Part shown: in pieces, positions 18,080 to 62,750 of the stretch
Position numbering within the stretch: the first letter of the stretch is position 1
Layout: every line of letters starts with the position of its first letter
From: Bispira polyomma
Taxonomy: Eukaryota
Reading direction: 5' to 3'
Assembly (NCBI GenBank): GCA_965649765.1
Contig: OZ287748.1
Location: 46,314,001-46,378,000, forward strand
DNA: 64,000 nucleotides
Program-made: the position numbers and the translations under genes
Notes under the pieces: model-generated
The model's input: only the letters and a program-made list of their open reading frames with translations
What the model was told of the DNA's origin: nothing
Database searches by the model: none

Positions 18080-19649
18080 TAGTCAAACCTAAAGGGACAA
18101 GAAGAAATACCTCTATTTAAGCATGATTTCTTCTTAACAGGGTAGACTGTAAAGAAAAATTAGTTTCAGTGACCACAAATTGTACTCCATACAAAAGAAA
18201 AAATGACCTAACAGAGTTTTACTTAATTGGGTTGAACTGCAGTACAACTATTATGTGTAAATTGACACATTACTAGTTCCTTCAAATGATCCACAAAAAC
18301 AGTATGTTCATGTTTTTTTCTGAAACGGGCGCCACCTTATTTGAAAAGGGTGCTGCCATCTTAGAAATAAGATGTAAGATTTTCATGGATTGGTTGAAAG
18401 CAATCAACCCGTCCAGACAGAAGGGGGTCAGTTTAATATTTATACAGTAGGGGTGTCTAGCTGGCCTGATTATATAGTGGCCATATGAATGTTAGTGTAT
18501 TTCACACTGTGCACTCTTGTGTTTTTAAAAAGATAACTCTTGTTTCTATGTCTTACTTACAGGTGGACATAAGGGCAAGGGTGGTGGCACACTGCGAGAA
18601 CACTGGCCACCTACACTGTACAGTGAAAAGTCCTCTCTTTTGCCGTCCTTCTCACTGGCTTTGTCCTACAAAACATTGACAAGAATATACTGTAGTAAAT
18701 CTATGTGTAAACTCAAGGCTTATAAGCTGAACAGGCAATGATGACAAACTAAATACATAGTATGGTAGAACCTCTATCTTTCAAACTTCTAAAATAATAA
18801 CAACTGGTGCATTTCTAGAGCACCAAATTGATGGGAACATCCTCTAAAAGGTGCTGAAAAAAGCATTCAACCAGGGAATAAACTAATGAAGTGGTATGTT
18901 TTGAGTTGGCTTCTGAAACCAATCTGTGCAAGCTCGTTCCATTTAACAGAAGCCGAGACAGCAAAGTGATAGTCTTGCCATATTTGACTCTTGACTTATT
19001 AGTGTGACCTTCATTGTAAAAACCTCAATGAAGACTATTCAGTAACATGCTTTCTTATCCAGTTTATCATTCACTTATTTACAGTGATACTATTTCAGCC
19101 AATATCTGATGGGAACTTTTCTGGGAGGACACCTTTCTTAAAGAGGGCACCTTTCTACCTTTCTTGATATGGGGATCGGAGTCTCTGATATTCGTTTTTT
19201 ATACAATGGTACAATGGATTGTGATAGTATGTCATTAGACCTCACTTATTTAAGAAATTTTAATGAAACAGAACTTTACCACAAGTCATACAAATATGAT
19301 TCTTAAGAGTTCATATCAAAATTATACTTATTTGCAATCACTTTGAATGACATCACACATTAACAGCCTCAGAACTGGTAGAATTATTAGCAACTTAGTG
19401 TGCAGGTAAAGTGTGAACTGATTATTTTTTACAACAAGACATCCATCAGATGTAGACATGAGAAACAAAGTTGTGATGGCTGTATGTTGGCGGATAGCCT
19501 TGTCAAAGGCTCTGTGGGTCACTTGGAACAATAATGACACTTGTTAGAAAGTCAATAGTTACCGCCTGGCTAACATAACATTAGGACTTTTATCTTTCAG
19601 CAAAGTACAGTGCAGTAATAAAAAAAAAAAATCATGGTATAATCAAATG

Positions 19650-24012: not shown

Positions 24013-24147
24013 CTGTTCCTCAGACTGTATAGATGCCATATCTAGGAACTGGTGAAGCCTGTCCAGTACATCTTTAGGGTGGGTCTTTAGTTCACCTGCA
24101 TACTGCTGGGCAAGCTTCTCCAGGTGTTCTGTGTTTACTGTACCATC
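24013..24147 (-). CDS. SASH1: Internal coding exon (45 aa) similar to vertebrate SASH1 exon 2; probable exon 2 of the SAMD5/SASH1-like gene
   Basis: Acceptor ttgatttttcag|GAT, donor CAG|GTATGT, 135 nt, phase 0-0, no stop. Peptide DGTVNTEHLEKLAQQYAGELKTHPKDVLDRLHQFLDMASIQSEEQ versus recalled human SASH1 [34 protein letters not shown]. Confidence 0.85.
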
Positions 24148-25925
24148 CTGAAAAATCAAGTCAAGCTTTGCACATTAATACTACAGTATCGCAGCAAATG
24201 ATTTGTTATATAGCTTTATATATTAATATATGTGATTGATCAAAATAATTTTTGACATGTACAGATCTTGTGTACTTTTGTATATGTGGAATTAAGTTAA
24301 AGCATTAAATTGGAACATCTTGATATTGAATAGTACACCATCTTAAGGTGTTTTACTGTTTTAGATCAATTAAACTTTCACTCCTTATTGGAAAGACAGC
24401 TTCATTTGAAAGCTGACCTAATTTCCTTATTTCTTTGTAAAGGTGTTGAACAAGAATCAAGAGAGTTCACTCAATACATTCAACTATTAGCCAAGTAGCC
24501 CTTTTATGGAGATTGTTACCTGTACCAAGACGGTTATGTTTATTGCCTGTGTGCATTGGTGTGTTTGTCACCAGGATTACACAAAAACTACTGAACTCAT
24601 TTATATGAAAGATACAGGAATGTTTGGACACTGTGGCCTTGGGGCTAGTTACTGTGTATACTAGACTATAGAACTGATACAATTAAAAACACATGAATAG
24701 CTGTCTTTATATATGGTAAAATTTTAAAGAAATCGGAAAAAATACCAGTACCTCTAGTTTAAGCAAGAATTGAATTAACGTAGGAGGTTTTTAAAAGATA
24801 AAATGCCTCAGTGGGAGACACACTTTTCATTGAAATAACAGCGAAAATGAATTAATAGAGTTCTACTTAAAGGAGTTTGATCACACAGTTGAAACATTTA
24901 AGTGGAACCTCAAAGGACCAGGAAAAATACCTCTACTTAAGCAGGACTTAGCAGGGTAGATTTTAAAAGTCAGTCCTTGAGGAACTGCAAATTATTCTGT
25001 ACAAAAAAGAGAAATCAACTTAACCGAGTTCTACTTAAAGAGGTTTGAGTGTATTTTATTGGCTGTACAAGACCTAAATGAAAGGACTACTTCTATAGAG
25101 ACCAATGTATCCTTGAATCCAATATTAGGAGATGAACTTTCTATATATAAATAACATGTTATCATGTTATGGCCCGATTTATATGCAGTCTCTGTATGCA
25201 TTCAGTTTTGGCTGTAAATCAGTCAAATGCTTTCTCTGGTTCAGCTGATTTTAGAAGAAATCTAGACAAGAATGGACAACATTAATCTTCTAATGAGCAC
25301 ATACAGTGCCACATATATCTGTTTTTATCCTTTTTTTTCTTACAATAGATTTATCATTGCTAGAGTCAGACATTATCTCAAAAGTGATAACAGCAGATTA
25401 CTTTTATTTGGAGAAAAACTACTTTGTGTTTCTTCTCAGTCACACAAATCTTCGGGGAGAAAAAGTAGTAGTGAATGATTGGATAAAGAAGAACAATAAA
25501 TGAGGCGCATACACCGGAAAACGGTTGTGGCGTCAATAAAGTATCTGGGTGGTCCAGATCTAACACACAGGATAATAAATAATAGAATGGAAAGCAAGGA
25601 TTTGGCCAGAAACAACTTAACTAAAAGAAAAGTATATTTTAAACTTAATTGCCCTGAATGTGTTTTTAAAAGAAGTACAAAGCTTGGACATGTCCCAGAG
25701 TCTTGTTTGTTGTTAATAATGAGAAGTCACCAAATAATGCTTATACGTGTATACAGTAGAACTTCTATTATTCAAACATTAAAAGGTTATAAAATAGAAC
25801 AGGTATTTATTTGTTTAAAGAAATCACAGAATGTTCATTAAATTTAATAAAATTTAATATTACTACTAATTTAATATGACTATTAATATTATAGTCTGGA
25901 TAATTGAGGTTCTACACTGTACATA

Positions 25926-26230
25926 CAGTTAAACCTCTTTAAGTAGAACCCTGATAAGTGGAAATACCTACTAGAAGTCATTTTAAGATGACATTGCTAT
26001 ATTTCTAATTAAAATTTACCTTGATAAGTAGAATTTCTGTTAAGTAGAACGTTTTTCCCCTTCAGATTCAATTTAACAGGGTTTCACTGTCTATAAATAG
26101 AGAGTTTGTGCTATATTTCTAATAAAAATTTACCTTGATAAGTAGAATTTCTGTTACGTACAACAAAATTTTATTGTCCCTTCAGATTCAACTTAATAAG
26201 GTTCCACTGTATATAAAATACAGAGTTTGC
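25926..26230. mobile_element. Family-A MITE with tandem duplication of its right half plus flank
   Basis: GCTATATTTCTAAT...CCCTTCAGATTCAA...CACTGT..ATAAA..GAGTTTG occurs twice (25996-26109 and 26110-26230). Confidence 0.75.
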
Positions 26231-29200
26231 ACTTGTAGAAAAGTACAATTTCCTTTATAAAACAAAACTCTGACCACTAATAACCTCCACACAAAAACAA
26301 ACTACTCTTTTTTTTACTGAGAACAGTTCAACATTAATATAATCACAACTGCAGTCCCTGCGAGTGTTCCCTAGGTAACTTAAAAATATGCAGCGATTAC
26401 TCTTCATATTTGTTTCTTCAGACTGGCGCCAAGTCTTCTGAGCCGGTGCTATACACTTGCTCAGATCCAGTGAAGAATAAATTGAATTGAGCACAGGAGG
26501 CTACAATGGTGTGATGAAAGGGCAGTACGATGGAGGACCGTAGGAGGAAGAGAGGGGGAGGGGGGGGGGGGGGGAGGACAAGGGGTGGGCTGGGGAGAGG
26601 GGTTATGGTAGTGTTACTGGTGCCTTTTAAAAGTGCATGAATCCTGATGAAGCCCTGTGGGGAATCTACAGCTACAGAACTCCGGGCTTAAAAAACAGAG
26701 CCTTGGCCAATTTACAGTCACCAATTAACAGTCACCAAAAATGTGAAGAGACCAGTGATGAAGTAAAGACTAAAAAGAGGTGGCGAGGGGGTGGGGGTGG
26801 GTGTACAGAGAATTATGGAATGGGAGGGGGTGGGTTGTTACTGCACAAAATAAAGGTTCCAAGGACTGCCTGAAAATGAACAAGGGTTTTAAATTAAAGC
26901 AACAAAAAAAAATCTTTGTCAGCAATTAAAATTGATGTCTTTGCTTTGGTTGTCTCTCTTTTTTAATGTCGTTCTTTTTCTTTTGATTTATGTCTTCAGA
27001 AATATGTTTTAAATAATGACTTCAGAAGTTTTGCTTTAGTGTGACAATTAAGTGCTATACAAGTACACCCATATGCTGCTTCCTGATCACAGATACTTTT
27101 TTGCATGGGTCATAATATACATGCCTATAGTTAATTACCTATTATCATGAGTTGGAAATACATGTACACGTGAATCTTAAAATTGTATGCAGATATATTC
27201 CTTTCCTCAATCAAAGATATGAGCCAAGCCATTAGGTCACCTTTTAAACTGTAGTTAATGGGACTTGATGGCGTGTGGTGAACATATCATTTATCTTCCA
27301 TTACAATTTTTCATGCTTTCAAACCCCTTGAAATGACAGAAACTGAACAGAAATAGTATTTACTGCAACATACCACTTATACATCATGCATATGACAGTT
27401 TTGCTTGGCCCTTAATTCATTACTGGATCATTACAATTGCAAATTTAATGTGATAAACCCCTCATTTATCAATCCCTTTGCCAACGGTTTATAAAACAAA
27501 TAGATGTTCTGAAGAAACAAATGAGTTTCGACCAACTGGTGTGTGCATTTACTTCTTTATAAGGGAAGTACAATTTGAAGCCACCTCCTGAGAAAAAAAA
27601 AAAGCAGAAATATGTTTTTATACATTTCCATTAGGTTTTGTAATTTAGATTCTGGACACCTTTTAGATTCATAACGTTGATAGGGTTTTAAATGAAACGG
27701 CATCAAAATGTAAAAAATCACCAAACCCATCACCTGAAAGTGTACAAATATAACTGTATGCAACTGTTATTTCAGTATATTGAACATTATCATTTGTTGT
27801 TATGATTAAGGGACAAAACTGAGCTTTTATTAAAGTGTGGTATGGACATTGATTATATTGACATCTACAATAATGCAGAAGAAAGCTAATCTGCCAAGCT
27901 CAAGGGGTTAATCAATTAAATGCTATTGTTGAACAACGCTGTGGAAATCTTTGAAATCAGATATGGTATTTACATAATAATTACAACTGCTGCTGTTTTT
28001 AAATTATTGTGTAAACTATATTTTATGTAACCACAATAACTAATTTACTATATTACACAACCGCATTAGTTTGTAAAAGAGTGAAAAAAAAATGGATAAA
28101 AAATGAATTGCAGCTCAATTTTAAATAACGATAAACAATTTTGGGAGAATAAAAGTGGGTTCAGAAGATAAAATATTTGATTAAATTTATCCAATATTTT
28201 TACTATAATTGTATTAACATGTACTTCCATAGTCAATATTTTTCTGTTTAAGGACAGTGAGCTATGGCTAGGAATATATAAACAATATAGCCATTTTCCC
28301 AGTTACGGGAGAAACATTTATTAGAAAAATAAGATGAATGTTTCTTTTTTTTGTCAGAGAACATAGACTTATGATATCCTAAAGACTTCAGATTACTGCT
28401 GTTTACAGACTGAAGGCTTCGTGTCAAGGTAGAAGTTGATCACAGAAAATCCCCAAGTAAGCTGAAGCTGTAAAGCTGGTTATCGCCCACGGCAATCGAC
28501 AGACTGTCTCTGTCCTTGTTTGGTGAAAAAAGAGAAGAAGACACAGCCCTTATAGTCACTCTAGGGTGTAGTTCAGCTGCAGCTCCACATTTCTACTGTA
28601 AAACTGTGTAAATAGGTGGCATTTTATAGCATGTTGTGACAGCTTCTACTTCAACTAAAACTTTCCATCAAAGAGCATGAAATCGGATATGTGTGGTTGA
28701 GAACCAAACAATTACCATTCTGAGCATATATAAGATTTTACTTGCTTTAATTTAATATGAGATCATTTAAAACTTATGTTTTGAGGTAAAATAAAAGGAA
28801 ATTGCAAATAGCCTACCTATCTTATCTAAACTTCTATTATCTGAATATTCAATTTTATGAACTCCAATTTATTCTCCCATTTATCATTTTGCTATTGTTT
28901 TATAATAAATTGCCTATTCTATTTTATGAACCTTCTATTAGCCGAAGAAATTCTTGCTCTCCTATCATGTTTGGAAGATAGGAGCCTCTACTTTATTTAA
29001 ATTGGAAGAAATCGAGGTTCATGTATAAATGTTAACCTTTTACTCTTGACAACAATTTGCTCATTTAAGCTGACAACTATAAAAGAATAAAAAGCCACAT
29101 TTATTTACATTCTATTGCTGCTTACTTTATTTTCTAATCAGTCAATCTCGGTTAAGTTGTCTTTGAATACACTTGGCAAAATAAAAGCCAGGAATTCATG

Positions 29201-30829
29201 GAAATAAAGGAGGGCAGCTTCTGGGTTTTTTTCTCCATAGTCTGCCCAGTTAATCTGAATTCATACAAGGTTACTTTTTGTTGGGATACCTTTGGACCCC
29301 AAAAGTTAGAAAAAAGGGCACAAAGGTATTTGGGAAGAAGTGGTAAATGCCAACAGCGTGGAAAAGAGCCTTATTAGGTGGGATGTGACAGGAATGAAAG
29401 ACAGCAAATTAGTAGGGGTTTGTTCTGCAGGAATTTAGCCTTACATTTGGCTGAAACGAGTATATGTTCCTAGACAATGATAGTACATATACATATATAT
29501 ATACATGAACTGAAAGCATGTAAAACAAAGTGAAGTCATTCAAGTTCAAGGTTATTAAGTGAAAGGTTTTTTCAGTTTAAAATAATGATTAGTTTTTATG
29601 ACTTAATAGAGCACAGTAACATAGACATAGGTACATCCAGATTTTCGAAGAATCAGAATTTGAGCAAAATACAATGTATTAGAAATAATGTATTAAACAG
29701 GAAGTAATACTGTATGCAGTCAAATGCAGTAAGGCTAGTTATAATCCTTTGTATCACCCTTATTCTAGCAAAAGGTTAGCAGAAGTCACATCACTCAATT
29801 CATATCTAACATTAATATTCACTTAAAGTCCCTATTGATAAGCATGTTTAATTAACAGACCATTCTTAGTATTTTCTAACTGGGGTTGATCAAATGTGAT
29901 AACGCAATGTAAATATTAAACAAAAACTCCAGTATAGAAGGAAGAATCTTTATAAATGTATATTCTGCCGATACGAGCGGTTAATCGATACGAGCAAGGC
30001 CAATGATAAATAAAATTTTAAAGTGACAAAATGATCTTTTTTCTTCTCCTTGATCTGTTGGAGTAAAATATAGCACAAAATTAGTTAGAGAAAAGAAACT
30101 TTTTTTAAATTACACACTCACAGCTTCAAATACAGTAAATATTCTTTTTTAAGTTCCAGGCTTACATTGTTAAAATGCAGCTCCGACTTTCACTATTTCT
30201 TGAGGTTTCTCAGTGTTTGTCCACATTAAAACCACCACATGTCCACAATAATATTGTATGTCTTGTCCAATATTACAACTCCTCACCAGTAAGTTTGCCA
30301 TTTGACTGAGCCGGGATGTCAGCTGCAGTACCTGTTCATCCATCCATAGTCATTCATGCAGTGCAGACCACTAAATCACCCAGTACTTATCCAGTAAATC
30401 ATACCACCTCTCACAGTATGCACTGTATATAATTCACACTTAATGACCTCATGATTTTCTATTTGCTTTACATTACATACCAGTGCCACAAAAAAGTCTC
30501 TCAACATATCTGATCCTACCTGGAAAACTACTGTTATACAGTATAAACACTTGCTTTTTATTTTGATTGTTTGATGATAACTTATCATATCAATAAATCT
30601 AATATATTAAGAAAGGATAGTAAATAAATAAAGCTATAAAACTAGTGTCAGACAGACCAACTAGGTTATAACCATCTCCACTGCATCACAGCTCAGCAGA
30701 ATAAGGACTTGTTTGACTTAAGCATGAAATGCTTCATAAAACCAAAGCTACTGAGGTTCAATAGGTTAAATGGAGCTTTAGGAGGGTACAGTTGGGGACT
30801 ATGCATACAATATAAAAATTTTGATAATA

Positions 30830-31220
30830 CAGTACAACCTCTATAATCTGAACTCCAATTATCAAAAGAATCAATTTTATAAACTCATTTCCACTTTCCC
30901 AAATCTACATTTCCTTATTGATTTATACCCAAATGCCTCTTTTACTTGATGAACCTTCTATTTTTTTCTGAATTAAACCTTGCTCTCCCAACAAGTTTGG
31001 ATAATAGGAGTTCTACTGTGGTTCTAAGGTAGAGTAGAACCTCTAATCTTCTAATTTCTGTCATCTAAATATTGATTTTATTAACTCCTTAATACTCACC
31101 CAAAGTTACATTGACCTTCTGTTATAAATACTAAAATACCTCTTTTGTTTTATGAACCTTGTGTTATCCAAACCAACATCTTGCTTTACCAACATGATTG
31201 GATAATAGATGTTACACTAT
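30830..31220. mobile_element. Two adjacent family-B MITE copies
   Basis: 30830-31018 and 31032-31220, same orientation, each with both TIRs. Confidence 0.75.
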
Positions 31221-33144
31221 AGTTTGTAGTGTGCTAACTGCTACACTATATACAGAACATATCAGCAGTGTGAACTTAACTCAATGGGTGGACACTAGAT
31301 TATGAAAGCTGTGCAGGTATGTCTGACATTTACAAATCCCTATGTACTGATGAAGAGATGAGAAAAATACATTGGTGTTTATGTTCATCTTAAATGTCAG
31401 ATACTAAAAGAGAGATAATGCCACATGGTTACACTAAGTATCAAAGGATTACCTTCTACTGATACAGCCAGCCCGCCAGCTTTGTTTTAATACCTTTTTT
31501 GTGCAGAAAATTTCATCTACAAGAGACTACAAGCCATTCTTGTATTAAAAAAAATGACAAATATATTAAACCTAATGCTGCCAGATAGTACCATATCTTA
31601 AACAAAAGCTCCTGCTCTTGGGTATTTGTAACTTGCGCCAGCTTGGTTCATGCACTGACCAGATTTGTTGCCTGCACATCCCTGCAGAGTACTAAATGAT
31701 CTACCCCAGTGATCCATCAACAGAGCCACCAGGAAGTATAGTCTGAATTGACAGCTGTACACCAGTAACTTAACTAATTAGCACCCCTTCCTGGATACTC
31801 ATTGATTGATCATATTACAATCTTACTGGGGAGAACTTGCTTCATTAGATGCCAGTCTGGCTGCTTAAGGGCACACACATCTACTGCATGTACAATGTAT
31901 GTGTGGTTTTGTTTGTCTGTGCACTGAGAGTGGACTAGGGCTTATTTTCAAAGCAGTTGAATGAAATAACAAAACCTCAATTATACAGGTAATAAAAAGA
32001 GCACCCACAAGAATTACACTTAACTGCAAGGCAATGAACTTTGAGTAAACCCAAACTGAACAGTCAAACACTAATCTCAGCATCTTATGAATGATGTAAT
32101 TTATTTTCTAAAATAATGCTTTTTCAATAGTGTTACTACAGTGGAATCTTCATTATATAAATTTACTGGGAGAGTTAGACTTCGTATGGATAATAGGAGG
32201 TTCATAAATAGAAGTCATTTTAGTATAAAACAATTGGGGAAACGGAAATTTTAGACCCTAAAATGGTTTTTGTACAATAATAATATTTGGATAACAGAAA
32301 TTCGATTAACAGAGGTTCTACTGTAATATAGACGTTAGACAGGCAATAATTATTGTGGGCATGTAACCTTTATTTATCACAGACAGTTTCCCTGTTTCGG
32401 AGTATTGCAAAACATTACATACATTTTATATCCACTTTACCACTGGCATGGTAGAATCACTTTATTCCTAATTAATGTTGAGAAAAAAAGATATAAATTA
32501 CTGAACAAAAAGGTCACCTAGAATAGACAAGTATTACGCAGATGACTTTCAGATGAATGTTTGATGAAACAAGCCCATCTGAAAAATGTCATTAAAAGTA
32601 ATAGTAAGCAATAAACATCAAAATCTTTCAAGAAGCTTTACCGTATATGATTGCCTGACAGAGACCTATATTTTAATCTTCAGTGGTATTACTTCCTCTT
32701 AGATTATCTTGTAAAAATAACTATAACTGCTTCATTTCATGAGTTTCTGTTACCGCCAAATTACAAGAAACACTGTAAAATAAATGGCGTCTGTAAACAA
32801 GGATAGCATCTGCATGACTGTCCCCAGCATATCATAACCACGAGGCCCTAATCTGGAAAAAGTGGACGACAAATTTTTCCACTTCCCTAGATGAGAAACA
32901 AGTCCCTAGGATGCATGCAAACAAGTCATATATCTGTCCTTTAATTTAATTAGGTTTCATGAATCCAATGAGAACTGATGAAAAGCTTGCATGCCTGAGC
33001 ATATTCCCTGCCAGACTTGCAACTGAGGGATGTAGATCAAAGCCTTTACTGCAGTGTAGTTGTACAGCTGACTGTCTGTATGATGACAGGACTATATACA
33101 AGTCATGAGAGGTGGGTAAGATAGAGAAAGTCTGAGCAGTTTTA

Positions 33145-33406
33145 GCCTATGTTTTCATGTAGCAGAACGCAAATTGCCAACAGATAACAACCGAGTTTAG
33201 TTTTTACCATAAAGCCGATTTTACAGGGCCGATTTTATGAGGTAAAAAGACATCATGATCATCAGGATTTGGACAAACCCTGCTAATTTTGTGTTAATTT
33301 TATTCACTATTTACAGGGTTGACAGCCAATATAAGACTTTTTCTTATCTTAGAAGCAACAAAAATCGGCTATGTCATTTGGCAGTATCTGGTATATGGAA
33401 ACACAT
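33145..33406. mobile_element. Harbinger-like MITE (CCTATGTTTCCAT-type TIR); shorter relative at 14003-14077
   Basis: GCCTATGTTTTCAT ... ATGGAAACACAT, with internal GCCGATTTT / AAAATCGGC. Confidence 0.45.
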
Positions 33407-33636
33407 CAAGATAAAATATAAGTAATGACAGAATCCATGTCCACTGCTTGTCCTCAGCTACATCATGGAAATGGGGGCTTACTTCTTTTAAGTTGGTGTA
33501 CGCAGTCTGTGAGTAGCACACACAAGTGTATATTTAGCTTCTTTGTCAAGTGAATTTATTGTATATACAATGTATTGTACACTTGTATTCATGTATTGTT
33601 CATATAATCTTGTATGTAAAAACAAAATATAATAAA

Positions 33637-34424
33637 AACTAGACCTAGTGTATCAGAGAACCAATGTATATTTGTATCCACCAGAACGACAGACCACCCT
33701 AGGTAGGAAGCACCCAAGCTTGGGCTACCCTCTTCTGACCTTGAAGGAGGGGCCCAAGGTCAAATCTGACCACATCAGAAGATTCTCAGCCCATGATTAC
33801 CTATAAGTTGGTTTCACATTGGAAAGCTGTACGACCAATAATAAGCGAGTTTTTAGCACTTTTAAGTTTGGCTATTGTCATTTGACCTTGACGGAGGGGC
33901 CCAAGGTCAAACCTGATCACATCAGAAGACTCCCAGCCCATAATTTCTTATAGGTTGGTTTTGCATCTCAAAACTGTAGGACCAATAATAAGCGAGTGAT
34001 AAGCACTTTTAAGTTTGGATACCTTGTTTGACCTTGAATGAGGGGCCCAAGGTCAAACCTGACCACATCAGAAGATTCCTAGCCCATGATTTCCTATAGG
34101 TAGGCCTCACATGCCAAACCTCTAGGACCAATAATAATGGAGATATAGGCACTTTCAAAGTTCGCTATAGGGGTACTTTGGCACTCCGTAGATGACCTTG
34201 ATTTTCAAAGAAATGCCGATGGCGGCCATCTTGTTTTTCAGAATGAGACTAATTTCAGTCGCAGAGAAGCTTACCTCCCAATGAAGATATCCTGTAAATT
34301 TTGTGAAGCTAGCTGGTCTAGTTTTCCGCTGAGAGTGTTAACGGTGAAAATCTCTCTGTGGTGGCAGTGGAGGCGGCGTAGCGAACGCTAAACCAAAGTA
34401 TCCACCGGATCGGTGGATACAAAT
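33637..34424 (+). mobile_element. Non-autonomous Helentron/HINE-type element with internal ~146-bp tandem array (about 3 monomers)
   Basis: Starts AACTAGACCTAGTG, 5' subterminal GTATCCACC, 3' hairpin GTATCCACCG-GAT-CGGTGGATAC (34398-34420). Monomers start at ~33734, 33881, 34027. No TSD, A-rich flanks. Second copy at 61678. Confidence 0.78.
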
Positions 34425-34544
34425 ATCAATCTGAAAAAATCTATTGAATACTTATATCACAGAGAACCTACTTTTTAAAGCACATCAGCCATTAACGGTA
34501 GAGGAATAAAAACGTCTAATTATTAACCAAGTGTTAAGTATTTA

Positions 34545-34723
34545 CAGTTAAACCCCTTTGCAGTAGAACTACATTTGTATGTAAAGTCGATTTCTTTTAA
34601 GAGACAAAAATGTAGTACTACCAAAGCCTTCTCTTTTAAAATTTACCCTGTCAAGTTGAAATCCTGCCTAGGCAAAAGTATTTTTTCTAGTCCCCTGAGG
34701 TTCGACTTGAAGGGGTTCAACTG
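34545..34723. mobile_element. Family-A MITE copy
   Basis: TA|CAGTTAAACCCCTTT ... AAGGGGTTCAACTG|TA. Confidence 0.8.
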
Positions 34724-36019
34724 TACTTATAGTTACTGTTAACAATGGTCTTTTATAAAATTATCAGAGGATAAAGTATGGTTTTAACTTAGGGCTACAT
34801 TATACACTGTCACATTATTAAGTAGAAAGAAAATGCCAGTTTCATTAATTCAAGGACCTGATTTATTCACAGGATTCTAAAATTGTTTGAATAGCTCAAA
34901 TGAAGACATAAAGAATCTTAGACATATACATGTATGTATATATATGTATATGAACAGTATTCACACTCTTATTGTAAATACCCTAAACAAGTCCACCAAA
35001 ATTTCAGAAATCATACCCAACCGGCTGCCTCACAATGTTTTAAAGTCTTGTCATGATGTGCCCAATATCCCCTCACATTTACCCATCAGCTTATGTCACC
35101 CCATACCAATAACTTATGCAAGGGTGTTGACTTATTCAGACGCTTCCCAGGTCCAATGTCTTAAACATGGGTTAATAGCGCTCAATTGAATTACTCCAAG
35201 AGCGAAAAGATCAGCTGGAATAATAAGCAAATAAGCATGAGACCTTTAAGTAAAAAATAAAAATCTCTCCATATTCCATATTTGTAGCTTTCGGAGGTAA
35301 AGAAAATATTGAAGTTATGCACCAATAGCACCATAGTCTTTACTTCTATGTGTATCTTTTGCAATAACAGAAACAGATTAACTTCACAGAAAGTGGATCT
35401 GTTCATTAAATATGGAGGACAACAAACTTGAAAAGCATGCTGACAAAAGAAGGTATTTTGATAACTTATTAGACACAAACAGAACCCTGAAAAGCCATTG
35501 AATCACCATTCTGAGTGAGGAATTTAGTCAGCACACATATATGGAGCTCCACACTCTCACATGTTTATCATAAATAAAAGAAAATAATTTCAAAAAGAGA
35601 TCTTTTCTACTCATATAATGGTAAGCCAATGAAGTTTGTCTGGATTTTTGCATTAAACTGTATAACTGTATCATTCTAGACTGTGGACATAAGCATCATA
35701 TTTCACTGTTAAATGTACAAAAAGTTTTTAAAAGCATTGAGCAACGAAAAGTGGCATTAATCTTTCTTGTTTATTTGGCCTGAATCTTCCTTGCCACTTA
35801 TACAATTGTAAAAGATTTAGTTTGTGTACATGGTATGATATGCTATCTATTTTGTCGGTAATTGCAGTGTATTCAGGTTTTAACTTGTAAACAAGATGAC
35901 ATGCTTTTTATTGTAACAAATTAAAGAGCCATACAGGCACTAAAAGCACAATTTATCTTAGTATAAATTTATATTTACCAAATTGTAATGTATTTTGCAT
36001 TTTTTACATGTCTTACTGA

Positions 36020-36249
36020 TATGAGGCATCTTCTGGAGCACAACAGAATCGCTTAACCAAACGAGAAGTCCAAAAATATACCCAGGTTGTAAGCAAATAT
36101 GTGGGAGTGTGCAGATAGAGAACTAAGGGGTATGCGAGTGTGAACAGATAGGTTTTGAGTTTTCTTCTAAACCCAGAAAGTGTTTCCAGTGATCTAAGCT
36201 CAACTGGCAGACTATTCTATAACATTGGGGCAGTGATTGACAAAGCTCA
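36020..36249 (-). mobile_element. 3' end of an L2/CR1-group LINE
   Basis: Minus strand reads ALSITAPML*NSLPVELRSLETLSGFRRKLKTYLFTLAYP*. Confidence 0.75.
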
Positions 36250-37698
36250 AAAAAAAAAGGAAAGCCTCTCACAGATAATATATCTTAGAATAAAGTGGAG
36301 TAAATTCCAGTTATTTCAAATTGTACATCAACCCACAATTACATCAAACTGATGATAATCTTTAAAAGTTCTGTTTCTTTCAAATAGTCTGAATAGCCAA
36401 ATCACTGTTTTGGTGGTTTGTTGTGGTCAGGCTCACTTATATAAAGACATTGGTCACTAAATTATCCCTGCAGGCACGAGTCTTTCACATGTCACTATGT
36501 CCAGTAATTCGACTGAATTGACAGCTAAAGGAACTGTCAATAGTAATTATAGCACGACATGTTTATCTTCTGCTGAACCAATTGGGACAAACATGGGAGT
36601 GTTTCCCTTTAGGAATCAGCAGCATTGGAGGAAACATTATACTTTGTGAAAACCATTATTCTCATGATAATTCTGCATGTATTTTGTTTTTCACAACCGC
36701 CTCTCTTTCCCAATGCAGGATATAAATGACATTTTTAAAATATGAATAATAAAGAAAAGAAGATGACAAAAGTATATGCAAATTTAAATCTCTTTATTAA
36801 CTAAAAAAAAAAAAAAGAAAAAATCCTTCTTAACTTTAACTAATGTCACTAAAAAACAAGATTTCCTTTGCAACATATCAACCATTACAGTAACAAGTTG
36901 TTACTGACAGAAAGGCAAGTTTAGCATCGCTTAGCATATACATAGGAGGGCCCATATTATCAAGTAGATCAAGCTCAAACTCCAAATAAACTCAAATTGG
37001 CAGAGAGCTCCATCTCTTTCTAAAGAAAATTTACATAAAATCTCACAGCCAATTTTAAGCTTGACTGCTAAAATAAGTGGGCAAAAGTATACACAAACTC
37101 AAACTTTTTTGTGCTTAGGAGATATAAAGTGTGAGACTGAGTTTATTTGGAGAAATACACACGCCTTATTGTCTAGCATTTTCCTCTAAAATTTCTCCTG
37201 TGAAGTAAAAAATATACCACACACAACAATAGGCTGCTGAGTCCAAAACGTATAACTATTGTCACATACAAAAAGACCTTGGCTTCTTTCATCAAAAAAA
37301 AAAAAAAAAAAGAAATGGTGAAACTCCCCAGAGTGCTGCCTTAAATTACCGGAATGTTTTACCTCCCACTTCCCTGCCGCAATTGTAGCCTCTCTCAAGC
37401 TCAACTATCTATATGACAGTGACATTAACTCTAATCTAATCTTATAGATAGCCCACTGATGAAAGAATAGTTATAATAAATATTAATAATCCAAATTTCT
37501 TAGCTGAAAGCTAAAGGCATGTTGAAAGGAAATGAAAGCACAGGCCGAGTAGGAGCTATATGGTTAAGTGAAAGTTTAATTGAATAAAATAACGAAGAGT
37601 CATTCACAGAAAACTAGAGCAGATGTAAATTTTTTCACCGATACTGAGATTTGGAGAAAGGGAATCCAAAGGAATGTTACAAAATCAGGAAAATAAAA

Positions 37699-37700
37699 TT

Positions 37701-37731
<31 letters not shown>

Positions 37732-37736
37732 GGGGG
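37699..37736. repeat. poly-T followed by a 26-nt poly-G run
   Basis: Direct observation. Other G-runs at 12264-12280, 26550-26575 and 63734-63749. Confidence 0.9.
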
Positions 37737-39981
37737 AATTCATAGTTTGTAAAATTCTACACAACCAGAATACTTACAACACCTTAAAACAAATGGACAA
37801 CATGTATTTCCTTTTATCAATATTAAGTTTATATCCCTAGTTGTAACTTTAACAATAAAACCTGCATGTAGTGTTTGTTGATTCTACACATACTAGAGTC
37901 TAGAGGTAGTGGGAATGCATTCACTAGTAATCACTACCAGTTATAAACTACTTTAAAACATGTTAAAATAGCTTTTATTGCAGATTTTCTTCCAAGCTTA
38001 AAACATGTATGGTCAGAGGGTCTACAATTCCTGCATAGTGTCTTGTTATATCATATTATAAACTCAGCGTTACTGTAATCCATAAATGTCAGCCTGGGCA
38101 AGACTAAACTGTTGCTCACCCTTATTTTTAAAGGGCCACAACTTCTTTTGGTATCGGGTCTTCTGCTCATTATGGAACAATCCATTTTATGCATCTTCAT
38201 TTGTATGTCTGCAGGCAGGCACCATTAGGGACAGGACTGCACCACTAGATTGAGCTGCAAGGCACACTTGTATTCAATCGAGCACAACTCAATTTGTCAA
38301 CTGCTCGATAGAGAGAACAAAAAATGTCACCTTTGTTTCTAAATTAAGAAAAAAAAAATCATTGTTAAGTAGAGGGTAACAGGGTAAGAGCAAATGAAGG
38401 TGCTTGTTGTGGAGGTTTTCATGGAAAATGGACCTTTAGCTTTGCCATATTTAAATGATGAAATGTTCTAAAATCTAAATATTTGGTTTTCTAAACTCAT
38501 TTCTGTTCTCCCACTAATTATTTGATATATAAATAGATGCATCTCTTTCATTTTGTAAATGTTATATTATGTAAGCAAAAACCTTCCATTTGAAAGTATT
38601 GGTATTCCAACATTCTACTAGTACCATAGTCACAGCCTTTTTAATGGAACTCTGTTAAGTCAATTTCCTTTCACGCAGAAATATCTTATGTTCTACATAG
38701 TGTTTTTCTTTTAAAATCTACCCTAATGGAGATCCTGTTCAAGTAGAGGTATTTCCCTTGGTACCGTCAGGTTTGACTTTAAGGGGTTCAACTGCATTTA
38801 AAAGCTTAAAGTTTTAGAGTTCTGTGTGAAATGTACCAGCATAGAAGTAAGTAAATTATAGGCGTTATAATTATACTCCTTTATAAAAAACAGAATAGGC
38901 AATATGTGACTTTAATATAACTGTAAAACTAAATCAACACAACTGTAAGAAAAGAAGAATGGCTCAAGAATAATATCATCTGGGAAATTAATTAGTATCA
39001 GTTTACTGACAAACTATCCATTTTATGACATTTTTTACTTACTTGGGTATGACTCCTGTTTATCATTTCCAATTGAAGATGACTAATTTTAAACATTTTA
39101 CTTAATGCCAACAACTATTTGAAAGCTTTAGAATATTATCATGATAATAAATTGATGTAAGGTTCGGTTTCACCTTTCAATTTATGCTGTAAAATTAATA
39201 ATATTCTGTTTCCTGCCATTACATCACTGTACCTTAAAGAGACGACACTTTTGCAGTTTTAGATTAGCAAAATGATCCAAATATAAGAACATATTTAATC
39301 TACATACAAGCATGATTTTTGTCTCTCAAAAGCAACTAGCTGTAGAATTCAACAGTAGCTTCCTTTGGTTATATAACATGATTTCAAAAACTTCTTATCT
39401 GGTATACATGTATAAACATGATCTATTTGAGGACCTATGAGAGTAGAGTGATGGGGTTACATTGAAGAAATCGTGGGCAACTGGAGTTTGTGTAAATGGC
39501 AACCTTAAAGTTAACGTTGTTGACTTGTACACAATTAGTCCTCAAGATGGCATCTGACGTCCTCAAGCCTCTCCCTCAAGTAACGGGAGACAAGCAACAA
39601 GAGGGGACTGTCAGCATTAAAAAGCAACCCAAACAGAAATAAAAACTATGCAAGTGGCTCAACACGGCCAATTTCACAAGTGTTGTACTTTAAATATCTT
39701 GCTCTGGCCTGTCACAGAATACAGAGGAAAGCAATCCTACTCATTTAGTCAATTTCCTTTTCGCTATTTAAACAGGAAAAGGGGGTTTTTAGCCTAGAAA
39801 TAACTAGCCAGAAACATCACGGCTGTGATGTTTTACGAACTCATCACTGATTTTTTTTCATATACCTTTGTAAAATCTGTAAATTACCCATGACTGATAT
39901 TCTGTTATTTTTTTGTTTTGTCAAACTAAAACAAAATAGTATGCGCAAAAAGCCAGAGGTACAGCAATACAGTTATTGGTA

Positions 39982-40290
39982 TAAGTCTATGTCTCCACAA
40001 GTACCATTTTCAGCTGTACCATGATGTACGATCCGTTTGTTTCATCTTTATAAATTACATATACCTCTCTCTATACACATGAATCCACTGTAGTAATTGG
40101 GACTGCTATAAAACTTTTCACTTTCTGGAGCAGAAATTTTCACATCGCACAGAAATGTTGTCATGACAATATTAAATCAAAATTAAATTTTTGCGCCAAT
40201 AATGTAATCCCTGTTTGAAATCGCATTCGTGGAGACACAAACCCCAAGTTTTTATCGCAAAATGTATATTGCCAGATGGTAGTTGTGCAG
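39982..40290. mobile_element. Second, oppositely oriented copy of the Kolobok-like element
   Basis: AAGTCTATGTCTCCACAAGTACC start. ATCGCACAGAAATGTTGTCAT and ATGTAATCCCTGT are complementary to 17855-17915. Confidence 0.6.
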
Positions 40291-42065
40291 GCATGGCCTT
40301 ATTCAAAGAAAGTAGAACTTGCATTATCTGAACACCTTGGGAGTCTGTTCAGATAATCGAATAATGTTCATAATATAAGAGAGTGTTTGACAAATTTATT
40401 TTTTTGAAACTAAGTGTGCATTATATATCATTTTTCCAGAAGATATATCAGTAATCTGTTGAACCTTATTGCAACCAAAGAGAAGCATGTTTCAAAAAGG
40501 TTTAGGACTTAGTTCTAGCACAGGCCAACCTATTTATTTATAGCTAGTATTGTTGAATCTTGGGGCCCTAAAATTGGTTCAGGTTCTAGATAAATTCAAC
40601 TTATACTGGTTCCAGTTACAGGGACTTACTTTAACTGATAAAATGGATACATTGCATTAGTATTGTGTATTGTGGTTGTAATGAGATCACAGGACGTGTG
40701 CAAAAGACTGAAATTTCTTCCCCCCTGAGCAAATATTATCTGCATTCAAAAAAAAAAATACTGTTGCTGATCTACCTACACGTTTTTAAACCAGTCTGAT
40801 GTGCAGAGAGAAAATATTACAAAAACATAACACAAAAGAAGAAATTCATATGAAAAGAAAGCCATCGTGTTTAGAAAAAACAATAACATTTTATCTGGCA
40901 AAAATGAGAAAAGCAGAGGCAAATATCTTCTTATCAGCATGAAAATACACTATGTACATAGAAAATGAAAATCTCAGCTTTTTTCTGAGCCACAGCTGCT
41001 AAAAGTAAAGGATGTAAAATCTGCCACCTATCATAATTTCGAAACATTAATACCTAATAGAATGTAAATATTTCCTGAACAAAATTTAATTACAGCCGAA
41101 CCCCTTTAAGTGGAACTCTGTTAAGTCAATTTCCCTTTTATGTGGAGAAAATATTGTACATGTAGTCCCAAAACGACATTTTTTTTCTGTAAAATCTGCC
41201 CTGTTAAGTGAAAACCTTGCTTAAGTAGAGGTATTTCTCCTGGTCCCTAGAGCTTTTTCTATGAAAAACATTCATCAACATTATTGTTGTACAATATTTG
41301 GGTTTTAAGTTTTCATTTCTTAATTTATTATTTGTTTCTGTTATTTAAAATAAAGTGTAACACTATTACTCTGTATATCATATGTAAAATTCATATCAAC
41401 TCTAAGACTCACAAATACATGTACAATCAGAAGTTTCATCCCGAGTATTAAATGCATTCCTGAGAATGAAGAAAAAAGATTAAACAAAACCACTGAAAGG
41501 TTGGGTCATGTCTTATAAACAGGCACATTTTTTGTCTTCAAACTTTATAGCGTACAAACCAAGAGGCTCCTACAGAAAGAAACCACACAGGCCAAGAAAA
41601 GTGACAAAAGTGACACAACTAGAAATAGTGTTAGTCTGTTGGAACAGATAATTATACCATGAACTCCATCTTGACAAAAGCCCAGGCAACAAATAAAAGG
41701 TGGAATATATCAAAATCCATGCACTATAAATTTAAAGTCACCAGAACCGCCCACATGTACTTTTTTACTGAACACATAAAACTTCAAATTCCCACAAAAA
41801 ACATCCCTTGTTGCATAATAAATACAACCAGCAGCACTCTAATCACTGAGCAAGTCATCAGTGGATTATCTACACATAGAACCTTTTAGCCGCTCTGTAG
41901 AGACATAGAGATGAGCTTCTAATACTTGATTTGACCAGTCCTCCAGATTTATGACCTCCCCTATAGCTGGTGGACAGAGACAACTGAATTGCGGCTGGTT
42001 TTCATACACCCATATAAGCCGTCTGTACACGTCACATGTATACGTCAACATTTTAGCTCCTTATA

Positions 42066-42243
42066 CAGTAGAACCTCTATTATCCAAACTTCTATTGTAG
42101 TAATATTCTATTTTTTTAAACTAATTTTCACTTTCCCAACTTTATATTTATATACAGAAAGGCCTCTTTCTATGTTATGAACCTTCTATTATCCAAACAA
42201 AATCTTGCACTTCCAACACGTTCGGATAATAGAGTTTTCACTG
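42066..42243. mobile_element. Family-B MITE copy
   Basis: TA|CAGTAGAACCTCTATTATCCAAAC ... GTTCGGATAATAGAGTTTTCACTG|TA. Confidence 0.85.
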
Positions 42244-43461
42244 TATATGTATATTTCTTTTGAGTGTGTTCCTATATTTGCGTGAATGTCAGGTGTATGA
42301 TTTTTGACCGATGTGGATGGCAGGAGTTGTTTAAAGCGAGTACTTTCTTTGTAGGTTATTTTACATGCCTAAAGTTTTAGCCTCAAGATTCTAACAAATT
42401 AGTGAAAGAATAACAAAAATCGGACCGTAAATAAATAAAAGCTATGTCTTTTCAAAACTGTATGTTATAAAATAAATAATCTAGCCTTATTGATGTGTAC
42501 AGATGACTTGAACGGATGACGTATTTGCCTGTATGGAAACGGTACTTAATCGAAAGACAGTTTTTGAAGCTGGCTGGCTAGTCAGGCTACTACTATTGGC
42601 CATTTACGGGGTCAGTCCCCTGGGTAACACTGAGAGTTTTGCACCAGTAGCTCTGCTTTTAATACTAATCTATGGAGGGCGTGATTAGAAATGACAATAC
42701 AGTTCATCAGTTCTTCTGGCAGTGTCCATTACCCCATGATGCAATTAGAGGTTAGGAAACTGGAAATTAGGCAGATAAAAAAAACCTAAAAAGGGGAGGG
42801 AGGGGGAGCACTGAGTTCGCAGCTGTGATTCTATTTCTGGTATAATACTGGATGTAGGAATATTTTGCCTATCAAGGGATTTATACAAACCTAGCAGTCT
42901 GATACTTTTTGTGAAGATTTCAGTGGGTTTCTTTTGTGTTTATAACAATACCAGCTTAAATCTAAGGCAATAAGAATATACCCATTCGAAAAACGTTTCC
43001 CCTATTTTCTTGTGTGAAATAGCTAATTAACTGCAAAAGCACTGGTTTACTTTTTGTAGCTTCTTATATATTTCAGTTTTCTAACCATGTTTCAGTTCCC
43101 GGCATTTATTTTTTTTTTCAACGTAAAAATATCTAGGAAAACCTTTCTATATTGAAGATGCAAGATAGGCAAGTTTTGTAGGGTTTTTGCTGAATAATGT
43201 GTAAATCTAAAAGGTTGGTGGTAAACCCACAGCTGGGAGGAAAACATTACCCAAAAATAGGATTTCATTTCAGGAGTCTACCTTCACCAAATACGGTTAA
43301 TAATACAGGCAAATATGGCAGTATGGTTTTCTATGTATCATTACTGGAAGAAAATGATACTAATACCATTTTCTATGTGTAAAAATATCACTTCCAAGAA
43401 TTATGCTCAAAAGCATAGTACACACATAGAATATCTGATGGGGCTACAAAATACTACAAAC

Positions 43462-43953
43462 CTCATTTACAAAGGGTGTCTCGGTCAGTTTCACTTGGTG
43501 CTTCACTAATTTATCCCTGACTATTGCACTGAGGTGCAACTTTGGGAAAGTTTTAAAAGCCTGTCTGCCCTCAGCATATTCATCGGTGGTTTTCTCTATA
43601 ATATTATCCTCCTCCTGCTTTATCACCTCTGTTTCGCCTCCATTGGCCAGCCCTGGGCTCTGCCCAGCGTCATAAAAACTGTCTCTCTCCCGTGGACTCT
43701 CTGGTGTTTCCAGTATAAAATACACATGGTGACTACCCTGTCGCCTCAATGCTTCCACCGCGTTTAAAATATCCCGTCGGTGCTCTCCCTTAGTGACACC
43801 GATGGCATCCAAGTCAGGATGACCAATCTGTTTACAGATTTCTAGGTCATCGTATCCGTTATCCAGGAAGGCTTGGGTGTAGTGGACGAGGTTTAGGGTG
43901 CGTAACCACTCTTCTATGAAGCACGAACTGTTGCCTTCTTGGCCTCCTTCCAT
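43462..43953 (-). CDS. SAMD5: SAMD5-type SAM-domain first coding exon (164 codons) of a SAMD5/SASH1(SKIP)-like gene
   Basis: Translation MEGGQEGNSSCFIEEWLRTLNLVHYTQAFLDNGYDDLEICKQIGHPDLDAIGVTKGEHRRDILNAVEALRRQG..VYFILE matches the SAMD5 SAM signature (EWL..L.L..Y...F.DNGYDDLE.CKQIG.PDLDAIGV). The C-terminal FPKLHLSAIVRDKLVKHQVKLTETPF resembles SAMD5 [22 protein letters not shown]. ATG at 43953 is in strong context (ATCATGG). Donor GAG|GTTTGT after 43462 is phase 0. Confidence 0.93.
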
Positions 43954-61677: not shown

Positions 61678-62750
61678 AACTAGACCTAGTGCATCGAAGA
61701 ACTGGTGCATGTTTGTATCCACCAAAAGACAAAGCACCCTCAGTAGTAAGCACTCTAGCTAGCACCCAAGCTAGAAGCCTACGATTTCCTATAGGACATT
61801 TATGCTAAAGCCTTAAATGGCACAAGTGGGTTTGACATCGCAAACCTGTGGGACCAATAATAAGTCTGTGATAGGAACTTTAAAGTTTGGCCTACCCATT
61901 TGACCTTGCACGAGGGATCCAAGGTTAAATGTGACCAAAAGATTAGGACCAATAATAAGCGAGTTATAAGCACTTATAAGTTTGGCTACCCTCATCTGAC
62001 CTTGAAGTAGGGGCCCAAGGTCAAATCTGACCACATCAGAAGAGTCCCAGCCCATGATTACCTATAAGTTAGTTTCACATTGCAAATCTCTAGAAGCAAT
62101 AATAAGCGAGTTATAAGCACTTTTAAGTTTAGTTATCCTCGTTTGACTTTAAAGGAAGGGCCCAAGGTCAAATCTGACTATATCAGAAGATTCCTAGCCC
62201 ATAATTACCTATAAGTTGGTTTCACAATGCAAACCTGTAGGACCAATAATAAGCGAGTTATAAGCACTTTTAAGTTTGGATAGCTTGTTTGACCTTGAAT
62301 GAGGGGCCCAAGGTCAAACCTGACCACATCAGAAGATTTCCAGCCCATGATTTTCAAAAGGTAGACTTCACATGCCAAACCTCTAGGACCAATAATAAGG
62401 GAGATATAGGCACTTTTAAAGTCTGCTATGTGGGGTACTTTGGCACTCCGTGGATGACCTTGAATGAAGAGCTGTATGTAGGTCAAATGTCTGTATGCTT
62501 GTAGAGGACATATATATCTGTTATACATATCACCTATGAAATGATTTAACCTTCTAGTTACGAGAACTAGCCAGTAGAAAAAGGTAGATAATTTTCAAAG
62601 AAATATCCATGGCGGCCATCTTGTTTTTCAGAATGAGGCTAATTTCAGTTGCAGAGAAACTTACCTCCCAATGAAGATATCCTGCAAAATGTGGGGAAGC
62701 TAGCTGGTCTACTTTTCCGCTGAGAGTGTTAATGGATCGGTGGATACAAT
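61678..62750 (+). mobile_element. Second copy of the same HINE-type element (about 4 monomers, 3' hairpin half deleted)
   Basis: Same AACTAGACCTAGTG start, GTATCCACC subterminal motif, TGACCTTGAAnnAGGGGCCCAAGGTCAAA monomers and GGATCGGTGGATACAA end. Confidence 0.8.

Follow-up and report, generated by a model that had tools for sequence, protein, structure and literature searches.

A SAMD5-type SAM exon as the probable first coding exon of a SASH1/SKIP orthologue in Bispira polyomma

Human SAMD5 and SASH1 are annotated as separate, neighbouring genes on the same strand at 6q24. Vertebrate SASH1 is placed with SAMSN1 and SASH3 in the SLy family, and a 2026 review (PMC13467429) treats this family as vertebrate, describes the N-terminus of SASH1 as undefined and does not name SAMD5. 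The same review leaves open whether a helical bundle before SAM2, at human residues 1092-1170, is a real domain, and predicts that this bundle packs on SAM2. The SAMD5-type and SLy-type classes of SAM domain bind the SAM domains of Eph receptors (PMC11820823, PMC13467429). Outside the vertebrates, Drosophila SKIP has been called a SAMD5 orthologue (bioRxiv 2025.06.12.659376).

In human, the two genes have been found joined in tumours. An in-frame fusion with breakpoints at SAMD5 exon 1 and SASH1 exon 2, about 881 kb apart, was present in four of five chordomas and confirmed by RT-PCR; copy number was unchanged and SAMD5 was highly expressed (PMC5352057). The fusion was also reported in 3 of 48 neuroblastomas, where the cases were mostly low-risk ganglioneuroblastoma (PMC7653769), in four grade I meningiomas that were benign and did not progress (PMC6489307) and in a BCOR tumour, where it was termed probably oncogenic (PMC13429291), and it is present in nearly all fusion databases (PMC11852724). 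The authors of these reports take it for a tumour fusion, possibly a driver or marker. No evolutionary, read-through or normal-tissue reading of SAMD5-SASH1 was found in the literature searched, which mostly lay outside subscription papers. The human side of the comparison made here is taken from these papers, so that the junction described below is set against a published description.

The window analysed is a 64,000-nt stretch of the B. polyomma genome (OZ287748.1 46314001-46378000, code G000:C1) and contains no N; the genome as a whole is 1.035 Gb. The first-pass annotation had proposed that a SAMD5-type open reading frame with a phase-0 donor is spliced to a 135-nt exon lying 19.3 kb downstream. 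Both exons and the donor were read directly in the sequence (Table 1), and in this species the splice between them, which we infer from the exon boundaries, is highly probable.

Table 1. Features of the SASH1/SKIP-type locus; a slash marks a splice point
Feature	Position	Strand	Basis
Exon A, first coding exon: SAMD5-type SAM, linker, first half of three-helix domain	window 43462..43953	-	492 nt, 164 codons, ATG at 43953
SAM domain, residues 8-70 of exon A	window 43744..43932	-	Pfam SAM_2 E 2e-15
Helix 1 and the loop to P-F-x-x-x, first half of SASH1_Homeodomain / NUB1-NTD-like domain, copy 1	window 43462..43557	-	hhalign 95%
Phase-0 donor GTTTGT (GAG/GTTTGT)	window 43456..43461	-	same residue in salmon, Saccoglossus, close relative
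Intron 1, 19,314 nt, GT..AG, putative	window 24148..43461	-	exon boundaries
Exon B: helices 2-3 (second half) of domain copy 1, SASH1 exon 2 counterpart	window 24013..24147	-	135 nt, phase 0-0
Exon C, 105 nt, phase 0-0, proline-rich motif	window 18561..18665	-	E 4e-4
Conserved helical motif	OZ287748.1 46297.5k	-	Octopus collinearity
Short motifs	OZ287748.1 46292.5k and 46290.3k	-	Octopus collinearity
SLy-type SAM1	OZ287748.1 46289.4k and 46288.9k	-	best solved relatives SASH3, SASH1 SAM1, SAMSN1
Second copy of three-helix domain	OZ287748.1 46279.0k and 46277.8k	-	cut by phase-0 intron
Terminal SAM	OZ287748.1 46276.4k (further exons listed to 46276.1k)	-	best solved relative SASH1 SAM2

The named relatives are annelid, mollusc and other invertebrate proteins. 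Among solved structures, the SAM domain of exon A is closest to the SAM of SAMD5 (5zrz_B, E 6e-21) and next to that of Caskin (6e-17); with the Octopus SAM as the query, it is the top match genome-wide, at 74%. The half-domain occupies the last 32 residues of the exon. If the frame is read past the donor, a stop is reached five codons on, at 43444, and it is possible that intron read-through yields a short SAMD5-like product. Intron 1 holds two more weak open candidates bounded by AG and GT, neither with homology. A 147-nt tandem repeat forms one array within this intron (33729-34155) and another at 61944-62419. The public runs found for the species, three in number, are all DNA-type in behaviour.

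Exon B has a pyrimidine-rich acceptor (ttttcag/ at 24148), 45 open codons and a donor (/gtatgt). Its peptide had been proposed to resemble the SASH1 family, and this is borne out by a profile that covers the second half of the domain and contains nothing from the window: in a search of 12,845 six-frame segments, it finds exon B at E 1.5e-8. When the whole-domain profile was run over the entire genome, the top three matches all fell within this locus, and in comparisons of exon B with seven natural half-domains six of the seven, the salmon half included, beat all 5000 shuffles. From the profile score, the genome-wide ranking and the shuffle comparison together it follows that exon B is not a chance open frame. 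Used alone as a query against all libraries, exon B retrieved only three sequences, of which two were true relatives, both short, and the third was an artefact of a repeat. The proline-rich motif of exon C is common to the Octopus, Pomacea and Lingula orthologues.

The boundary between exons A and B is predicted to split a single three-helix domain, with helix 1 in exon A and helices 2-3 in exon B. The window exons were compared singly with alignment A4, the joined form being represented by natural database proteins, and hhalign placed the tail of exon A at positions 2-32 (95%) and exon B at 38-65 (96%). Across the join, the annotation is PF26285 SASH1_Homeodomain; the match is faint for the salmonid half and reaches full strength when the joined salmon protein is considered. 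For the natural joined salmon sequence with 15 rows, the predicted fold is one three-helix unit (pLDDT 75; helices 7-21, 40-51 and 55-71), and the junction (33/34) lies in the hairpin between; a single-sequence prediction of P0016 reached pLDDT 35 and gave no usable fold.

The profile of this domain also matches NUB1, where the domain is unsplit, at residues 12-67 and across the junction (E 1e-7), and predicted NUB1 structures resemble the salmon domain fold with TM 0.76-0.80. True homeodomains gave weak fold matches only (E above 1, Z about 5), so that DNA binding by the three-helix domain is unsupported, and a feature search of the structure atlas with the isolated domain returned no match. 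In NUB1 the domain precedes a ubiquitin-like domain, unlike the SASH1 copies, and it is dispensable for FAT10 degradation. A weak match to the domain profile (E 0.03) at G000:C14:20620577-20620672, on the minus strand, may be the N-terminus of this genome's own NUB1.

Further downstream in the same gene, a second copy of the domain is interrupted, like the first and at the matching residue, by an intron in phase 0. For exon B the highest scores are with first copies; for the downstream exon the highest is with the Octopus second copy. The bundle before SAM2 is shared by vertebrate SASH1; for the question raised over residues 1092-1170, this means that the bundle is conserved in invertebrates, is duplicated, and is homologous to the N-terminal domain of NUB1.

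The donor of exon A can be followed in other animals. A valine five residues past the conserved proline, with unrelated tails after it, was seen in 94 of the 117 alignable proteins among the first 121 homologues and in 148 of the 184 first-half-only proteins among all those collected, counts that refer to related proteins, not independent events, and that span arthropods, molluscs, annelids and deuterostomes. A GTN donor, when translated through, reads as valine. The valine followed by divergence in stand-alone homologues is thus what reading into a GT donor produces, and by this pattern well over a hundred "SAMD5-like" database proteins appear to be first exons read into their intron. At the DNA level, a phase-0 GT was found at that residue in a salmonid (AAG/GTAGGC), in Saccoglossus (CAG/GTAAGT) and in the closest relative (GAG/GTTTGT). 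The Capitella donor sits 13 codons further, and an exon B counterpart follows 6.5 kb downstream, in phase 0-0. No such counterpart was found within 10 kb of the donor in Saccoglossus or the closest relative, where the introns are probably longer than that.

Both halves of the domain occur in 21 collected proteins, 16 of which continue with D-G or E-G, like exon B. The joined form is held by Octopus, Pomacea, Babylonia, Lingula, tick, thrips, bee, ant, lacewing and two salmonids, and two joined proteins were checked on intron-less contigs from public sequencing runs. Several of the joined database models end at 250-440 aa, and full-length continuity comes from one RefSeq protein and from collinearity. 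Octopus sinensis XP_029658518.1 (RefSeq SASH1 X2) is 1452 aa long and has the SAMD5-type SAM first, one SH3 and three SAMs. In Oncorhynchus nerka, the RefSeq model XP_064881095.1 joins a SAMD5 exon to a D-G-S-L-G exon across 102 kb, and an 862-aa SPIDER+SAM gene lies 3.7 kb after it on the same strand. The exon-2-like half-domain on the SASH1 side in salmon matches exon B, and what we take to be the first peptide of human SASH1 exon 2 agrees with the salmon sequence. In the Lingula P0218 model, the exon B counterpart appears three times in tandem, as either a real duplication or an assembly artefact.

On the minus strand, the locus spans about 82 kb and runs past window position 1. The Octopus 1452-aa protein (P0204) maps collinearly onto it at no fewer than seven places, and the SAMD5-type SAM, domain copy 1, the short motifs, the SLy-type SAM, copy 2 and the terminal SAM stand in the same order in both. 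By best solved relatives, the three SAMs are, in sequence, of the SAMD5 type, of the SASH3/SASH1-SAM1/SAMSN1 type and of the SASH1-SAM2 type, the last two types being shared with vertebrate SASH1. SLY, SH3 and SAM exons had been expected downstream; both kinds of SAM are present, but no SH3 was found and no SLY region was detected. No SH3 was found in the locus with two Pfam SH3 models, with the Octopus SH3 as query or by reading through the sequence ahead of SAM1, and none was seen in the interval 46289.5k-46290.3k (L004:5500-6350), where one is expected since Octopus (at 777-829 of its SASH1) and vertebrates carry one there. The absence is apparently a loss in this lineage, or the SH3 may have been missed through extreme divergence. 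The search of the locus for SPIDER/SLY (PF12485) gave no match with a positive control that was also silent, and Octopus P0204 is without PF12485. The locus is a SASH1/SKIP orthologue by descent, and not a full SLy family member by the SH3 feature.

The order of the SAMs, the collinearity with Octopus, the shared intron position, the conserved donor and the joined products all argue for one gene. The locus is very probably the single SASH1/SKIP orthologue of this invertebrate, and its first coding exon is what is called SAMD5 in vertebrates. The first-pass annotation had proposed a single SAMD5-SASH1 gene, and this holds both here and in other animals, as seen from joined proteins, collinearity and the conserved donor. 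Vertebrate SAMD5 shares with exon A the SAM, the C-terminal half-domain and, in salmon, the phase-0 donor at the same residue; it is annotated as a small separate gene, whereas here it is exon 1 of a long one. A small stand-alone SAMD5 gene should have a conserved C-terminus of its own, and the tails past the donor are unconserved. Canonical vertebrate SASH1 has SPIDER and SH3; unlike the locus, it has no SAMD5-type SAM, and its copy 1 is missing helix 1. Insect relatives carry the joined domain and an arthropod cluster carries SAM+SH3; Drosophila SKIP itself presumably combines a SAMD5-like SAM with SASH1-like domains.

The human fusion matches the locus in being in frame and in joining SAMD5 exon 1 to SASH1 exon 2, across a gap of about 0.8-0.9 Mb as against 19 kb here. 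This suggests that the "cancer fusion" does not come from a tumour rearrangement but is a natural long isoform of ancient origin. It is likely that in human the SAMD5 and SASH1 genes have remained a single transcription unit, and that normal cells, using the SAMD5 promoter, produce the "fusion" across an intron of nearly 0.9 Mb as the ancestral full-length form of SASH1. This long isoform alone would carry a third SAM and have its N-terminal three-helix domain complete; SAMD5 and canonical SASH1 would hold one half of that domain each. In vertebrates, the intron probably expanded, short SASH1 gained a new internal first exon and SAMD5 a private end, while the old splice was kept. The transcript that had been predicted for vertebrates, from SAMD5 exon 1 to SASH1 exon 2, is found in the salmon RefSeq model and in the papers on human tumour RNA. 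The joined Octopus form is already annotated, and the human junction is published as a fusion. Besides the extra N-terminal SAM that had been foreseen, the junction completes the split domain.

The joined architecture is therefore already known from automatic annotation and the human junction from the tumour literature; the link between the two, together with the split domain that supports it, was not found stated in the papers searched. Human gene annotation may already hold predicted long isoforms. If the long-isoform reading is true, an entry in cancer fusion databases is a normal, conserved isoform, to be filtered out or taken as an indication that the SAMD5 promoter is active, and SASH1, a tumour suppressor and pigmentation gene, has an unstudied longer form with three SAMs, two of them of the Eph-binding type.

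It could also be that there is one gene in invertebrates only, that the mammalian genes are separate, and that the human fusion is tumour-specific and reuses a vestigial donor. The papers found report the human junction from tumours only, and the distance between the breakpoints would also favour this reading. We nevertheless regard it as unlikely: the same reports describe unchanged copy number alongside high SAMD5 expression in most of the chordomas, and place the fusion in benign meningiomas and mostly low-risk ganglioneuroblastoma, and salmonid gene models carry the same junction.

A much less probable arrangement follows the human annotation: SAMD5 would be a gene of one exon, ending at the stop five codons past the donor, next to a SASH1-like gene that has a first exon of its own, and the joined forms would be occasional read-through. 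In human, the two are annotated as distinct genes and each protein has been studied by itself, most database homologues are stand-alone, and the frame of exon A does end in a stop. However, the tails after the donor begin with valine and are unconserved, the exon boundary cuts a folded domain, a second copy of this domain within the same gene has the same intron, and the Octopus RefSeq entry is one protein of 1452 aa. Least probable of all is a derived join, in which separate ancestral SAMD5 and SASH1-like genes fused once or several times. The species compared all lie within Bilateria, and elsewhere in this genome there is another SAMD5-type SAM exon, one that lacks the half-domain; but protostomes and a fish have the join and a hemichordate has the donor, and this reading would first require separate genes to have held the two complementary halves of a domain that is older and, in NUB1, unsplit.

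Under the one-gene reading, exon A would be spliced in phase 0 to exon B, then to exon C and to about ten more exons over the 82 kb. The product would be a scaffold with the SAMD5-type SAM, the three-helix domain, a disordered region (the SH3 apparently having been lost), the SLy-type SAM, the second three-helix domain and the terminal SAM. By analogy with the solved SAMD5-EphA5 and SASH1-EphA8 complexes, it is most likely a non-enzymatic adaptor, whose two Eph-binding-type SAMs would dock on receptor SAMs. Whether such a scaffold would bridge or cluster receptors is, on the same analogy, an even question, and there is a similar chance that the three-helix domains serve as protein-contact or packing modules beside the SAMs.

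The second SAMD5-type SAM exon, L025 (OZ287748.1 27874603-27874833, minus), has 47% identity to the Octopus SAM; its open frame is without the first half of the three-helix domain, and it is possibly a paralogue. Around SAM1, an intronic, degenerate near copy of the 3' end of the first SAM1 exon was seen at L004:5220-5340, and at L004:7700-8350 there are several decayed copies, also intronic, of the preceding exon's end. A stretch within the intron after SAM1 (46285.2k-46288.4k; L004:1200-4400) is GC-richer, has broken frames and resembles a decayed retroelement. Just beyond the 3' end of the gene, on the opposite strand, a coding stretch that by eye is HIT/HINT-like lies at OZ287748.1 46272686-46273078 (plus).
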